Source of the DNA: Paramoeba atlantica
Taxonomy: Eukaryota > Protista > Discosea
NCBI GenBank assembly: GCA_977017575.1
Contig: CDRNVI010000162.1
Coordinates: forward strand, 1 to 29,546
Direction: 5' to 3'
Length of the DNA: 29,546 bases
Positions 3,189 through 14,390 of this stretch are shown one piece after another; the stretch's first letter is position 1; the number at the start of each line of letters is the position of its first letter. Both the position numbers and the translations under genes were made by a program. The notes beneath the pieces were generated by a model. That model made no database searches, was not told where the DNA came from, and saw only the letters and a list, made by a program, of their open reading frames with translations.

Positions 3189-3782
3189 GAGGTAAAAGAA
3201 CACTCAATCCTTATAGTTGCTTAATCTGTATGTTTTATTACGAAAACAATATAATAAAAAGTAAAATTAAAATAAAATGAAAATTAAAATTAAAATTTAA
3301 ATTTATTTTTAGTCGATAAATTATGTTTACCCAATTAATAATTTATGTCTAAAAATTAAAGAACAAGCATAGTTTAGTCTTATTCCGTGTTAAGTCCTCA
3401 ACCCTTAAGTCGGACTTGTCACTGCATTTTATATTCTAGCTTTATTTACTTAAAATTAACCTAAGAATAAATTTTAAAGTATAAAGCTGAATATATTCCA
3501 CTGACCCTCGACCTAGTTCATTTTTATCTTTACTTATTTTTATTTCCACAATAGCAATAGAAAAACTAATTTATTTTTTATAATTCTATTAAACTTTTTT
3601 TTATTTACTTTAGCTCCTTGAACACAACAATCCGCAAAACTAAATCTAAAAGATTAATTAAAAATTATGAAAATAAAATAGATACAAAATCAAAGTTTTT
3701 AAGCCTCGTCTTAGAATAAATAAAAACTTATCTAAATTCACCAACTCTATTTTTTATAAAAAAATATAAAAATATGAGTCGG

Positions 3783-4520
3783 ATGATTTTAGAGAGTTTA
3801 TGTTTATTCTGAAGCTCCTGTATTCATCACATGAATGTTCTGATCAGGAGTTTGTATAGGGTTTTTAACCCTACAAACCTACAGCTTCAAAACATGAATG
3901 AATTGAATAACATTTTCAATGTCCTGTGCTTACTGGCTCTGATTGGATAAATCTTATCAGATGCACAGAGCACAGTGTATTCAAATTCATCGTTCCTATT
4001 ACTCTCTGTTTCTTTGGTTCATTCTAAGTGAAGTTCTGTTGTTTGGCTCGTTACTTTACGTACTCAACTATACAAACTTAACTTCTCTTGAATTCATTCC
4101 TTTTCACTTTTTACCTTTAGAATTCTCGCAAGCGATCCTTCATTCCTTTTGCTCCTTTAATTTTGTTGCCTTCGACCTAACAAGTGTCGTGGCAAATTCT
4201 TGATTTCTTGCTGCCTCAGGCACGACAGCTAACGCTTGTCTCTACTCGATGGCCGTAAACTGGCACATCTTCGAGAACATCCATCGCCTATATTCCGTTA
4301 CATTGGCATGAATTTTCATATGCCATCAATGAACGGAATTTTATTCTTTTCCTATAACCGCTAACACAAACACCTGTTGCTCTTCCTCCATATGCCTAGA
4401 ATCTGTTCATTTCATTCATTTGATCTTAGGCTGTGGAGCCTTTTTCTGCTTAAAAAAGGAAAAAGGGGAGGCAGGTGATTTGGGGGGTAGCGGTTTGAGG
4501 ATGTGATGATTCTTGTTTAA
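3783..4520 (+). CDS. cox3: Cytochrome c oxidase subunit 3 cryptogene, kinetoplastid-type (TGA=Trp; 5' frameshift edit; pre-edited 3' domain ~4451-4520)
   Basis: With TGA=Trp the frame runs from 3793 through the homologous region without TAA/TAG (8 in-frame TGA between 3832 and 4330). It gives RVYVYS..FLWFILSEVLLFGSLLYV (Glu at 4030)..SLEF..ANSWFLAASGTTAN..HQWTEF..HFIHLILG (4408-4431). These match trypanosomatid COIII motifs FLWFIISE, INTFLLFVSGLFVN, NQVWEF and HFSHVFLG, with similar spacing. The last helix (YWHxVD) is recoverable only by U insertion. The 3' end (TAA 4518-4520) is approximate. Confidence 0.9.
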
Positions 4521-4550
4521 AAGAAAAGACGAATCATCAAAGAATAAAAG

Positions 4551-5010
4551 ATGGGAGTTTTTGTGAGATTTGTAGGAGAGTGCGATGATGTTTCAGCCTT
4601 CTGCTATCCTCATTACTAGTGATGAAGGTTACCCAATGCTTCCCACTAGTATTCGGATTCGCATCCTGCAAACACATGGATGCGATCTGATTTATTTTAG
4701 GGAGCTTCATATTAGTAATACTTGTATTTCGCTTAATTATGTTGTTATTTGGACATAATGAATTATGTTTTGATTTAATACGTATGGGCAGGGTAGAGGA
4801 ACGAGGATAGAGGGATAGAGGTAGAGGTTAGAGGTGAACGATGCAGCTGAGATAATGAGATGAGATGGTAAAGGGGAGCTTAGGTACGACACAACGAGGG
4901 CGGGAAGTTGTGTGAGTACCTGGACGCTATATTGAGGTTGGGGCGGAGATGTAGGTGAATGTGTCAAGTATGTGAGATGTGGGACGCATCGTGATGCTTC
5001 AAGGGGAGAG
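4551..5010 (+). CDS. cox2: Cytochrome c oxidase subunit 2 cryptogene (unedited core ~4586-4783; pre-edited 5' end and pre-edited C-terminal half)
   Basis: The unedited frame 4586-4783 reads WCFSLLLSSLLVMK..FASCKHMDAIWFILGSFILVILVFRLIMLLFGHNELCFDLIR. This is collinear with trypanosomatid COII (..DFISSKFIDTYWFVLG..LLRLCLLLYF..FDLCK). The following G/A-rich 4784-5010 decodes by U editing to IVGFQWYW, YLIGDLRILQ, KLWVSxVDVIHSFT, DCIPGR and YGQCSEICGxxHxxMP. The start ATG at 4551 and the end at ~5008-5010 are inferred. Confidence 0.88.
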
Positions 5011-5199
5011 ATCTGCGATTAAAAGCTGCCCATACGAAAATCAAAAAAATAACATCAAAATTTCCCAAAAATAAACAGAGTTAAATTTTATTATCACATA
5101 TTTTTTTAATACCTGTAATTTATTAAATATTTAATTACAAAAATAATTTAAAATATTATCTATAAATAACCGTATAATAAAAAATAGTAGTTAAAAAAA

Positions 5200-7430
5200 T
5201 TAAACTTAAATTAAAATTAAAATTTAAAAGTTTTAAAACTATAAATATAAATTTATAACTTATTAATCATTGAAATTAAAAAAAATTAATTTCGAAATGA
5301 TTTAAAAAGTATAAAAATTAAAAATTTAAAAGTTTAAAATTTAAAATTAAAATTTAAATTTATTTTTAGTCGATAAATTATGTTTACCCAATTAATAATT
5401 TATGTCTAAAAATTAGCAAGAAACAAGAATAAAATTAAAATCAAAATTTAACAATTTTAAAACTATAAATATAAATTTATAACTTACTAATCATTGAAAT
5501 TAAAAAAAGTAATTTCAAAATGATTTAAAAAGTATAAATTAAAAATTTAAAAGTTTAAAATTTAAAATTAAAATTTAAATTTATTTTTAGTCGATAAATT
5601 ATGTTTACCCAATTAATAATTTATGTCTAAAAATTTTTACAAAATTAGCAAAAGTAATAAATTAAAATTAAAATTTAAAAGTTTTAAAAGTATAAATTAG
5701 CTGGTACAAAAATGGTAAGTTTCTCTGCCGGAAATCCACCGAAAAGACGGTTTTTCCGGCGCAAACTCCAATTTTGTTACCAACCGGTACAAAAAGGGTA
5801 GTCTCCCTGCCGGAAATCCACCGAAAAGACGGTTTTTCCGGAGGGAACTCCCATTTTGTTACCTATAATTTATAACTTACTAATCATTGAAATTAAAAAA
5901 AATAATTTCGAAATGATTTGAAAAGTATAAATTAAAAATTTAAAAGTTTAAAATTTAAAATTAAAATTTAAATTTATTTTTAGTCGATAAATTATGTTTA
6001 CCCAATTAATAATTTATGTCTAAAAATTTTAAAGCACAAAATTAAAATTAAAATTTAAAAGTTTTAAAACTATAAATATAAATTTATAACTTACTAATCA
6101 TTGAAATTAAAAAAAATTAATTTCGAAATGATTTGAAAAGTATAAATTAAAAATTTAAAAGTTTAAAATTTAAAATTAAAATTTAAATTTATTTTTAGTC
6201 GATAAATTATGTTTACACAATTAATAATTTATGTCTAAAAATTTTAAAGAATAAAATTAAAATTAAAATTTAAAAATTTTAAAACTATAAATATAAATTT
6301 ATAACTTACTAATCATTGAAATTAAAAAAAATAATTTCGAAATGATTTGAAAAGTATAAATTAAAAATTTAAAAGTTTAAAATTTAAAATTAAAATTTAA
6401 ATTTATTTTTAGTCGATAAATTATGTTTACACAATTAATAATTTATGTCTAAAAATTTTAAAGAATAAAATTAAAATTAAAATTTAAAAATTTTAAAACT
6501 ATAAATATAAATTTATAACTTACTAATCATTGAAATTAAAAAAAATAATTTCGAAATGATTTGAAAAGTATAAATTAAAAATTTAAAAGTTTAAAATTTA
6601 AAATTGAAATTTAAATTTATTTTTAGTCGATAAATTATGTTTACACAATTAATAATTTATGTCTAAAATTTTAATTAAATAATTTTATTAAACTTTTTTT
6701 TATTTACTTTAGCTACTTGAACACTACAGTTCGCTAAACTAAATCTAAAAGATTAATTAAAAATTATAAAAATTAAAAAATAAAAAACACAAAGAATAAA
6801 ATTAAAATTAAAATTTAAAAGTTTTAAAACTATAAATATAAATTTATAACTTACTAATCATTGAAATTAAAAAAAATTAATTTCGAAATGATTTGAAAAG
6901 TATAAATTAAAAATTTAAAAGTTTAAAATTTAAAATTAAAATTTAAATTTATTTTTAGTCGATAAATTATGTTTACCCAATTAATAATTTATGTCTAAAA
7001 ATTTTAAAGAACAAAATTAAAATTAAAATTTAAAAGTTTTAAAACTATAAATATAAATTTATAACTTACTAATCATTGAAATTAAAAAAAATTAATTTCG
7101 AAATGATTTGAAAAGTATAAATTAAAAATTTAAAAGTTTAAAATTTAAAATTAAAATTTAAATTTATTTTTAGTCGGTAAATTATGTTTACACAATTAAT
7201 AATTTATGTCTAAAAATTTTAAAGAACAAAATTAAAATTAAAATTTAAAAGTTTTAAAACTATAAATATAAATTTATAACTTACTAATCATTGAAATTAA
7301 AAAAAATTAATTTCGAAATGATTTGAAAAGTATAAATTAAAAATTTAAAAGTTTAAAATTTAAAATTAAAATTTAAATTTATTTTTAGTCGATAAATTAT
7401 GTTTACCCAATTAATAATTTATGTCTAAAA
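5200..7430 (+). repeat. AT-rich tandem array of ~214-215-bp units (about 9 units, one interrupted)
   Basis: Core gtcgataaattatgtttac(c/a)caattaataatttatgtc starts at 5369, 5590, 5983, 6198, 6412, 6626, 6958, 7173 and 7388. The regular spacings are 214-215 bp. Further cores occur at 260, 465, 3312, 10903, 11142 and 11319. Confidence 0.95.
5703..5863. repeat. Pair of ~80-bp GC-richer hairpin elements inserted in the AT-rich array
   Basis: 5703-5781 and 5786-5863 share ctgccggaaatccaccgaaaagacggtttttccgg. Each folds back on itself (ggtacaaaa/ttttgttacc; ccggaaa/tttccgg). Confidence 0.85.
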
Positions 7431-10208: not shown

Positions 10209-11290
10209 TATATAATATTTTTTACCATATTTAATTACAAAAATAATTTAAAATATAGTTTATAAATATTATTAAAAAGTATAAATAATCTCATTCACCC
10301 TCAATAAAATTCGTATTTCATAGAAATACCTCCTGCCCGAAAAAGCGCCAAAAAGCGCTTGTTCCGGCGGAAATTCGTCCACAGTTCCCTGTTTTTACAC
10401 GATTCTGTTGGAAAATGACGGTAACACCAAAAGAGGTCCGTCATACCTAACAGAAACGGCAAAACAGGAAATGTTAAACATTTTTCCGCCGGAAAATACG
10501 TCTTTTTATCATTTTCTCGGCAGGAAATTGGGAGTCCCTTTTTAACACGATTCTGTTGGAAAATGACAGTGTAAGTCGGTAAAAAAACCTTCCTCACTTC
10601 TATTCCCAACAAAAACGGTTAAAAATGGGGTTTTAAAAATCCCAATTCCTCCGTAGAAAATCGCAAAAAAAGACTCTTTTCTGGCGTAGGAGACTCAACT
10701 GCCTGGAACACGATTCTCTTGGAAAATAGCAGTGATTAGTAACATTGGATTTTGAGCCAAAAAGCATCAAATCCATTAGTTTACAATCACTGTTAATTTC
10801 CAACAGAAACGGTCCGTCTTCTCGCCCCGAATTTTGTATAAAAAACGCTTTAAATAAGAGAATTTTTATTCGTTTTATATCAAAATTTATTTTTTATTTT
10901 TAGTCGATAAATTATGTTTACCCAATTAATAATTTATGTCTAAAAATTCAAAAAATTGAAATTAAAATTAAAATTTAAAAATTCTAAAACTATAAATATA
11001 AATTTATACTTGATATATAATATTTTTTACCATATTTAATTACAAAAATAATTTAAAATATAGTTTATAAATATTATTAAAAAGTATAAATTAAAAATTT
11101 AAAAGTTTAAAATTTAAAATTAAAATTTAAATTTATTTTTAGTCGATAAATTATGTTTACCCAATTAATAATTTATGTCTAAAAATTTAAAGGACAAAAT
11201 TAAAATTAAAATTTAAAATTATATATAATATTTTTTACCATATTTAATTACAAAAATAATTTAAAATATAGTTTATAAATATTATAAAAT
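10209..11290 (+). repeat. Second AT-rich repeat zone: ~80-bp unit (10209-10285, ~11012-11090, ~11221-11286) interleaved with 215-bp-repeat cores
   Basis: atatataatattttttaccatatttaattacaaaaataatttaaaatatagtttataaatatta occurs three times. Cores are at 10903, 11142 and 11319. Confidence 0.85.
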
Positions 11291-11509: not shown

Positions 11510-11727
11510 AAATTATTACAAAAATAATAATTTTAAAATTTTTTCTTCGAAATTCAAAGAAGAATTTACTTGAAAAAAAATAAATTTCTATGTTTACATA
11601 GGGGATGTAAACTGAAATTTATAATTATATTTCGTTGAATTAAGAGAATAATTAAACGAAACTGTTACTCGGCAAAAATAAGGGAATTTTTGAGTAACAG
11701 ACCGTTCAAATTGAAAACAAAAAAACA

Positions 11728-11867
11728 ATTTGCACGGCAATTCTTGGGGTTTTTACGCCTCACGGCTTCGTGATCGGATAAAGAGCAGGAGCGAGAGCAA
11801 GAGTTTGTAGGCGGTAGATGATATAGGTGTTCCCGGTGCGAGTTTATTTTTTCTCTATATTCCTTAG
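11728..11867 (+). CDS. rps12: Probable pan-edited ribosomal protein S12 cryptogene
   Basis: Purine-rich island. Its non-U skeleton decodes in order to T-P (acg cct 11755-11760), xxP, xSGNR, VCxVRL, SN and GGRVKxLPGVRY (ggc ggt aga 11810-11818; ccc ggt 11832-11837). Compare S12 TPKKPNSALRKVCRVRLTN..GGRVKDLPGVRY. Several U deletions are needed and the conserved Asp reads as Gly. Boundaries are approximate. Confidence 0.55.
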
Positions 11868-11869
11868 TT

Positions 11870-12110
11870 GTGGCAATTTGGGATAGCGAAGTAAAATTTT
11901 TAAAGTTTGCTATCGACAATTGCTCTTCTCTTTTTTATTTTGCCGCACATCGCTAATTGATCCCAATAGACGATTGCATTAAGAAAGGATCGTTAACTTC
12001 ACTATATGAACAGACATAAGATTCAGTAAGATCCATTCATATCTCTCTGCTTCTTTTAATGGCCTGTAGCATACTCCCCATTTCCACAATCCGTATGCGC
12101 TCAGACCTAT
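11870..12110 (+). rRNA. Possible divergent mitochondrial LSU rRNA domain V fragment
   Basis: Motifs occur in LSU order: GGGATAGCGAAGTAA..TATCGACAAT (11880-11920), ATCCCAAT..AAAGGATCGTT (11960-11995), TCAGACC (12101-12107). Several local stems are present, such as gatagcgaa/tttgctatc and ttgggat/atcccaa. The ACCTCGATGT core and the A-loop are poorly matched. Confidence 0.3.
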
Positions 12111-12625: not shown

Positions 12626-14390
12626 CACGATTTTATTGGAAAATTAGCAGTGTAAAAGTGGTCAAAAAAAGACTCACATTCACTGCTGATTTCCAGTAAA
12701 AACGGCAATTCGTGCGCCCTATTGGAAAACTGATAGTGCGTGGCTGTCAAAAAAGCCTGCCATCACTGTCACATTTCCTATAGTAGTTCAGTATTTTGCA
12801 TGATTTTGTAGGAAAAATAACAGTGCGTAAATTTTTATTATTCACGATTTTATTGGAAAAATAACACTACGAAAGCGATTCAAAAAAATTCGCATCAGTG
12901 TTAAATTTCCAACAAAAACGGAATAAATAAAATTACATCCCTGTTAATTTTCCAACACAAACAGCAAAATAAAGGCACTATTTTGTTGGAAAATAACAGT
13001 GAATTTTCACACGATGCTCTTGGAAAAATTACAGTGAGAAAAAAATAAGACTCACTGATTTTTCCAATAGCAAACGGTTCCAATACTGATAAATTTCCAA
13101 CAAAACATACAAAAAAAAGTGAAAAAATTGCAAATTTCCCAAATATCGGAAGTTTTACTAGATTATCTGTTGGAAATTTAACGGGTACCCTCCGAAAAAA
13201 CGCCGGGTCGACTCCGTTAGTTTTCCTACAGTCAGTAACCCTTCCTGCAAAAAAAATCGCCACCCCCGAATAAAGAATCGAATTGGCGAATTTCTTTGTG
13301 GGAAAATTAGCAGTAAAATTTTCATGTTACAATCATAAAAATGCAATAGAAAAAATTCCTTACAGGAAAATACACGGCAAAAATTGATTCCCAAATTTTT
13401 AGCCTGTGCCGGAAATTTTCTTCGTCGCTCGATTTGTTTCGGAGGCAAAAAACGAAACAAAAACGAAAATTCTACTGTAGATTTTCCTGTAAGGAAATTT
13501 TCTATTTTACATTTACAAATCCGTCAATCAGGATTTAGATTGTAAATCAAAATTTAAAATTTTTCCACACTTAATTTTTTCACTAAACTGTTGGAAAAAT
13601 GACTGTAAAAAAAATTAACAAAAATAAATTTTTTTTCTAAAAACACAGTCAATTTTACAATACAGCTAAGGGAAAAAATTAACAAGGTTTTGAAACTCTC
13701 ATCAGTAAATGTAACTGTAAATGACCTATTTTTTTATCACGTTTTTGTGTAGGAAAATTATCGCTAAAAGGCTTATAAAAAAATAACCCAATTTATAGCG
13801 TTAAGTTTCCAACAAAACGGATCAAAAAAAAGATACATACCAGTTAATTTTCCTGATAAGAGAGCAAAACCTAAATCTATTTACACGATTTTTGTTGGCA
13901 AAATCACAGTGCATGATTTTATATCTATCACGATTTTATTGGAAACATAACACTATGAAAGCGATTCAAACAAATTCGCATCAGTGTTAAATTTCCAAAA
14001 AAAACGGATCCACATAAAATACAAGCACAGTAGAAATTCCAACAAAAAACGGAAAACGATAAATTTTTTTGCACGATTTTATTGGAAAATGTAGTTATCA
14101 TAAATTTTTACTATTCACGATTTTATTGGAAAAATAACACTACGAAAGCGATTTAAAAAAATTCGCATCAGTGTTAAATTTCCAACAAAAACGGAATAAA
14201 TAAAAATAAACGATACTAACAAATTTCCAATAAATAACGGCAAAAGAAAAGGCTTTTTTGGTCCATTTTGTTGGATAAACGACAGTGTCTTGATTTATTT
14301 TAGTTTCCCGCACGATTTCTTGGAAAAATCACAGAAAACGGCCTGCAAACATAAATCAATTACAGTCAATTTCCCAACAAAATACAAAAA
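12626..14390. repeat. Dense cluster of TGGAAA..TTTCCA hairpin elements
   Basis: Successive fold-back elements with conserved arms and different interiors, e.g. 12626-12705, 12720-12784, 12843-12921, ~13019-13067 and ~13168-13231. Confidence 0.8.

Follow-up and report, generated by a model that had tools for sequence, protein, structure and literature searches.

A Probable Pre-edited 3′ Domain for the CuA Half of COX2 in a Kinetoplastid Mitochondrial cox2 Gene

Results

The window, by which we mean the whole 29,546-base stretch of DNA that was analysed, comprises a 14,868-bp unit twice over, the two exact copies showing 0 mismatches at an offset of 14,868, and an ENA contig (ERZ24900291 ctg3782c, 40,689 bp) carries the same sequence, with identity over 20.6 kb. 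Because the 14,868-bp copies are exact and the 40,689-bp contig is identical, the unit is, on sequence grounds, a gene-poor mitochondrial chromosome that is either circular or tandemly repeated. Besides cox3 and cox2 it contains AT-rich spacers (~10% GC), a tract rich in purines near 11.7 kb and ~9 kb of moderate-GC DNA laden with repeats; an Rfam scan of the entire 14.9-kb unit returned no match. The setting is that of kinetoplastid mitochondrial DNA, in that TGA is read as tryptophan, cox3 lies upstream of cox2, and the N-terminal half of cox2 is homologous to kinetoplastid COX2. Among the repeats of the window is a hairpin element present in ~12 full copies and additional partial ones (925-2560, 10400-10810 and 12630-14330), which has the arms TTGGAAA and TTTCC(A/T)A, variable inner stems and a loop consisting of an A-run, and often follows CACGATT(C/T)T.

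Directly upstream of cox2 on the forward strand lies cox3 (3793 to 4520), an open reading frame in translation table 4 that reads as mostly unedited, with a conventional part from 3793 to ~4450 and a purine-rich 3′ tail at ~4451-4520. By tblastn its product is 27-40% identical (E values of 1e-17 to 1e-45) to the cox3 of kinetoplastid metagenome loci and of locus L050; the protein collections searched contained no named homologues, and a near-identical cox3 protein (P0001) comes from ENA ERZ24900291. L050 (positions 59-820 of a 1.4-kb contig from another ENA assembly) encodes a cox3 that is 40-46% identical to that of the window; behind it comes a G-rich tail of the same sort (GGTGATTTGGGG...GCGGTTTGAGGA), and no cox2 lies downstream. 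A further locus, L049, is nuclear or retroelement-related by appearance. At the exact junction of the 3′ tail of cox3 with the cox2 region, 4504-4518 and 4525-4539 form an inverted repeat of 15 nt with 87% complementarity and a 6-nt loop, which may be a processing hairpin.

The middle of cox2 (~4580-4783, forward strand, with an approximate 5′ limit) encodes two transmembrane helices without need of editing, uses TGA for tryptophan, and ends, in the cox2 frame, with F-D-L-I-R at 4769-4783. When 4571-4783 is translated with table 4 and aligned with the N-terminal halves of 13 kinetoplastid COX2 proteins of metagenomic origin, local BLOSUM62 scores of 63-86 are obtained, against ~28 ± 5 for shuffles (z of 6-11.5). 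Upstream of this middle part, the purine-rich tract at 4521-4579 on the same strand is a putative, as opposed to an established, short 5′ edited domain of cox2; the wider interval 4440-4579 contains 31% G and 6% C. Decoding of the 5′ region towards the COX2 N-terminus gives a z of 0.2 relative to shuffles, a value to be read with the method's uninformativeness for hydrophobic N-termini in mind.

Past 4783 the genomic frame continues for eight codons (MGRVEERG) and then meets a stop at 4808-4810. The composition switches at the same place, from 25% A, 17% C, 19% G and 39% T in 4580-4783 to 29% A, 10% C, 41% G and 20% T in 4784-5010, and returns to ordinary values after 5010. Both the frame break and the switch in composition are directly established, and they bear out an earlier reading of this DNA from its letters (hereafter, the sequence-only reading), according to which homology in the genomic frame ends after FDLIR where the DNA becomes G/A-rich and U-poor. 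The tract that begins there (4784-5010, forward strand, 227 nt) has the look of a G/A-rich, T-poor skeleton of a pre-edited 3′ domain, predicted to encode the CuA domain (115 residues) and a stop codon. It is followed by a 3′ flank (5011-5046) of ordinary composition, presumed to be the 3′ UTR and to serve as anchor site of the first guide RNA.

The sequence-only reading had proposed that the T-less skeleton of this tract be aligned with kinetoplastid COX2 and scored against shuffled skeletons. References were collected from metagenome contigs by means of a degenerate DNA pattern in which codons for F-Q-W-Y-W and for C-S-E-L/I-C-G stand 245-275 nt apart in this order. The pattern search yielded 29 loci, nearly two-thirds of them plainly kinetoplastid cox2, from which 13 distinct C-terminal halves were obtained; a Pfam check of three reference proteins matched each of them to COX2 (PF00116) with 76-98 bits (cut-off 22). 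A scan of viral contigs for GFQWYW.Y returned 18 chance matches and no cox2. The skeleton, consisting of 4784-5045 with every T removed (209 letters), was then aligned by a dynamic programme with a BLOSUM62 profile of the 13 references, each codon being composed of zero to three skeleton letters plus inserted U, with stops forbidden and gaps allowed.

The best reading of the T-less skeleton is gapless, comprises 115 residues, consumes 179 skeleton letters and ends at 5008. Its score of 461.9 (z ~10) compares with 379.9 ± 8.2 (maximum 420) for 2000 mononucleotide shuffles and 380.6 ± 7.8 (maximum 409.5) for 2000 dinucleotide shuffles, such that none of the 4000 shuffles reached 421. Among the remaining controls, the reversed skeleton scored 367.6, the reversed profile 382.4, and 300 column-shuffled profiles 385.7 ± 7.6 with a maximum of 411. 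Like the frame break, the highly non-random, gapless collinearity of the skeleton with COX2 is directly established, and the outcome of the proposed comparison, 461.9 versus 380 ± 8, clearly favours a cryptogene domain.

The signal is also specific to this place on the chromosome. When the computation was repeated in 1190 windows along the two strands of the 14.9-kb unit, the top score belonged to the one at 4776 (456) together with its neighbours, and the best unrelated window lay in the purine-rich region near 11601 (score 403). On variation of the start position the score forms a plateau at 4780-4786 and then drops steadily. The region holding the runner-up (11601-11870; 403 versus 462) is itself purine-rich.

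The agreement extends to the positions at which the reference proteins do not vary. The decoded reading reproduces 52 of the 55 invariant reference columns, against a mean of 39 and a maximum of 46 in shuffles; for the non-hydrophobic invariant columns the corresponding figures are 27 of 30, a mean of 17.6 and a maximum of 22. Over the full length it equals the consensus of the profile at 87 positions out of 115. Since the decoding was optimised towards the COX2 profile, neither single residues nor the numbers of U at ambiguous sites can be relied on. Each of the 13 references used singly gave a z of 6.5-12.3, the best fit being to L019, L027, L039 and L040 (z of 11-12.3, at 88-93% of their own self-scores). 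In a check that dispenses with protein, the T-less domain was compared with the T-less DNA of conventional cox2 genes, giving a z of 2.2-6.4.

The conserved blocks recovered along the skeleton include GFQWYW, GDLRLLQ, VDVIHSFT, VDCIPGR and YGQCSELCGVLHGFMP. The sequence-only reading had placed them alike, and the unbiased dynamic programme arrived at the same positions; where that reading had invoked U insertion only, its solutions are exact when worked through by hand, with 4784-4797 giving IVGFQWYW, 4829-4846 giving YLIGDLRILQ and 4914-4927 giving DCIPGR. The CuA ligands were sought as the histidine of the DVIHSF block, as C-x-E-x-C and as H-x-x-M, and since the conserved blocks are recovered, all of them are present in the decoded reading, in VDVIHSFT and CSELCGVLHGFMP. 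Given that the decoding was fitted to COX2, the ligands are thus readable from the skeleton, which does not imply production of the protein.

With the encoded T residues retained and a penalty set on deletions, the decoding leads to the same protein blocks, with 139-143 predicted U insertions and 21-23 predicted deletions. The predicted edited domain measures 345 nt plus the stop and would arise from 227 nt by a net gain of 121 U, which falls within the 100-130 estimated in the sequence-only reading. The skeleton letters immediately following 5008 are A-G (5009-5010, forward strand), which a single inserted U would convert into a UAG stop. We take this as the predicted 3′ limit of editing, to within ~12 nt on either side; the limit is a soft one because the C-terminal tail of COX2 is poorly conserved.

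The pre-edited RNA is predicted to form a long-range stem that brackets the whole domain and appears in both the minimum-free-energy and the centroid structures. Its 5′ arms (4768-4776 and 4781-4791, forward strand) lie at the 5′ edge of the domain and pair with arms in the 3′ flank at 5038-5046 and 5026-5036, respectively. The duplex energy is -26.5 kcal/mol, compared with -10.1 ± 2.7 for shuffles, none of 2000 being as good, and 4768-4791 is the best partner site of the 3′ flank along the transcript. The stem is strongest in the pre-edited form; after the predicted editing, with its last block completed, it would be weaker, at -18.4 kcal/mol. No extra A or G stands opposite insertion sites, and because it is without such guiding purines the 3′ flank stem is not a cis guide. 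The stem might still act in cis as a clamp, marking or protecting the cox2 message before editing or timing the completion of editing, or be an evolutionary relative of the trypanosomatid cox2 3′-UTR cis-guide, a conjecture that we regard as unlikely.

Public sequencing runs were inspected over 3700-5300. Apart from a 2015 run labelled 'RNA?' (X5), in which none of this locus was present, they were of unspecified kind and came from a single study. In runs X3 and X4 contigs collinear with the DNA pass across the domain into the AT-rich spacer at comparable depth, and because they do so both runs look like DNA libraries. As X3, X4 and X6 are all DNA-like, U editing is neither seen nor contradicted by these runs. 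In X6, the largest run, the contigs are interrupted at 4511/4559 and 4789/4839, close to where the purine-rich tracts have their borders, and those of the smaller and deeper X3 and X4 are contiguous across the same points; low depth, variants or a mixed library are candidate causes of the breaks.

A search of the 14.9-kb unit for guide RNAs matching the decoded message gave no candidates above background by any of four approaches. Exact runs of Watson-Crick and G:U pairs in the unit reached at most 19 nt and lay within conserved hairpin arms, and for the hairpin element as such complementarity to the decoded cox2 message was not above chance. Alignment with free U-indels over the unit was swamped by AT-rich DNA, with equally high scores in the null; 28- and 36-nt windows of the unit with up to three mismatches did no better than the null; and alignment of the unit to the decoded message with penalised U-indels gave 43 against 36-57 in the null. 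Guides, if any, may reside on other molecules, or the predicted U counts may be too imperfect for guides to be found with them.

Discussion

Taken together, the data argue that 4784-5010 very probably represents the 3′ domain, in pre-edited form, of a cox2 cryptogene in kinetoplastid mitochondrial DNA. This domain would span the entire extramembrane CuA half of the protein, from just after the second helix to the stop. That editing takes place, that it is directed by guides and precisely how many U each site receives are what we infer beyond the collinearity of the skeleton. Under such a scheme cox2 would be transcribed as written, with the middle (~4580-4783) requiring no change; from just past FDLIR to the stop the DNA would store only the A, C and G letters of the message and some surplus T. 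Editing would add ~140 U and remove ~20 encoded U, yielding a frame of ~345 nt for a complete CuA domain and making the UAG stop from the A-G at 5009-5010. By analogy with the kinetoplastid system, it would proceed in the 3′ to 5′ direction, beginning at an anchor duplex formed in the 3′ flank from 5011 on, and overlapping guide RNAs would presumably specify the insertions and deletions.

A different account, which we consider improbable, is that the tract descends from an edited domain and now belongs to a decaying or non-productive cryptogene that yields no functional protein, the working copy or the function being located elsewhere. Three invariant columns are indeed unmatched, neither an RNA nor a guide RNA showing processing came to light in the runs and the unit searched, and our inspection covered one chromosome of what is probably a multipartite mitochondrial genome. 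Against decay, 115 codons are read without a gap, with 52 of 55 invariant positions and all CuA ligands in place and a stop following immediately. Were even one A, C or G lost or gained, this collinearity would break, and no such change is seen; the never-edited upstream half is intact and in frame.

Very improbable is a second account, in which the CuA half is restored at the RNA level by other means, for example by trans-splicing of modules together with U-appendage or substitution editing in the manner of diplonemids, in place of guide-directed U insertion and deletion in one transcript. Euglenozoan relatives do possess other systems of repair at the RNA level, and the search for guide RNAs in the window came up empty. 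The skeleton, however, is continuous and complete, lies on one strand and directly follows the unedited half, and it differs from a conventional message only by U added or removed, which is the kinetoplastid U-indel signature and is seen likewise in Perkinsela cox2.

It is harder still to credit a split gene, of which the mitochondrion would encode the membrane half only, as a cox2a-like unit ending near 4783-4810, with the CuA half supplied by another gene and the purine-rich tract being non-coding. Known split cox2 genes are divided at roughly this point, soon after the second helix, with a nuclear cox2b in chlorophycean algae and apicomplexans, and the genomic open reading frame here stops soon after the second helix as well. 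A non-coding tract, on the other hand, would not hold the ordered, gapless non-U letters of a CuA domain at a z of ~10. Finally, chance resemblance, whereby a purine-rich tract under free U insertion reads as a hydrophobic, U-rich protein, would suit the high absolute scores of shuffled skeletons (~380) and the method's want of discrimination at the hydrophobic N-terminus (z of 0.2), but is effectively refuted, since none of the 4000 shuffles, the reversed skeleton, the 300 column-shuffled profiles and the 1190 other windows approaches the real score and the best other purine-rich, cryptogene-like tract attains 403 versus 462.

The proposed pre-edited domain invites comparison with the cox2 of trypanosomatids, in which Benne and colleagues are reported to have described, in 1986, the insertion of four U at the frameshift in KVDCIPGR under a cis guide located in the 3′ UTR. 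Both cases concern one and the same gene, and that four-U site falls inside the domain in the window. In trypanosomatids, though, a single site receives 4 U, whereas by our estimates ~100 sites would here receive ~140 U over the CuA domain. The trypanosomatid cis guide, moreover, pairs with the edited site and bears guiding purines, whereas the 3′ flank here pairs better with the pre-edited 5′ edge and does so without guiding purines.

A closer likeness is found in Perkinsela, whose cox2 comprises an unedited middle, a 5′ domain of 55-57 nt and a 3′ domain that measures 227 nt in CCAP1560/4 and 177 nt in GillNOR1/I, with 151 or 148 U, respectively, inserted and 28 or 26 deleted in the 3′ domain and a protein of 209 aa (David et al. 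2015, mBio; PMC4669381). Both the size of the 3′ domain and the editing load are similar in the window (227 nt, ~140 insertions and ~22 deletions), these being predicted here and experimentally established in Perkinsela. The contrast drawn in the sequence-only reading, with trypanosomatid cox2 and its four Us, accordingly holds for trypanosomatids only, given the 151 or 148 Us of the Perkinsela 3′ domain (PMC4669381). A large 3′ edited domain in cox2 is therefore not unprecedented, having already been found in Perkinsela (PMC4669381), and the pattern, known there since 2015, is no new concept. Gene order differs: in Perkinsela cox2 is found with cox1, and cox3 belongs to rps12-cox3-cob (PMC4669381), whereas here cox3 lies directly upstream of cox2. 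Identity of the window with Perkinsela CCAP1560/4 was considered and rejected, as the T-less skeletons of published cox2 and cox3 mRNA snippets are absent from it. Two cox2 snippets and one cox3 snippet gave no T-less match within three substitutions in cox2 or cox3, and the sole three-substitution match lies at 11793-11813, outside both genes.

In Papus ankaliazontas most mitochondrial mRNAs are pan-edited, and cox3 is so heavily edited that its transcript is more than twice the length of the gene (PMC7859406), in contrast to the cox3 of the window, which is mostly conventional. Papus ankaliazontas, Apiculatamorpha spiralis and Trypanoplasma borreli resemble the arrangement predicted here in that, outside trypanosomatids, respiratory genes are edited in distinct 5′ and 3′ domains or throughout, a comparison that for the latter two is drawn from general descriptions only.

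Among the metagenomic references, the arrangement is reversed in those that fit the skeleton best. In L019, L027, L039 and L040 the CuA half is conventional and the 5′ part is purine-rich and pre-edited-looking, the opposite of the window; these loci are not close relatives, because their cox3 is only 27-30% identical to that of the window. A larger set of loci (L019, L027, L029, L036, L038, L039, L040 and L047), all from one clade of uncultured kinetoplastids, has a conventional CuA half and a G-rich N-terminal region devoid of an open reading frame, which in these cox2 genes looks like a long 5′ edited domain. Set beside uncultured kinetoplastids in which the 5′ part is apparently edited, the window suggests that edited domains shift freely along one gene.

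The window would add a further kinetoplastid lineage in which the catalytic CuA half of cox2 is present in the DNA only as an editing skeleton. Annotation performed without U-aware decoding would call this cox2 truncated, and the decoded cox2 offers a precise target for RNA-seq and small-RNA data. One of the metagenomic loci, L043 (184-474), carries a trypanosomatid-like cox2 with a frame break immediately after KVD, at the classical 4-U site, and its FQWYW-to-CSELCG spacing is 274 nt, compared with 276 nt in unbroken genes.
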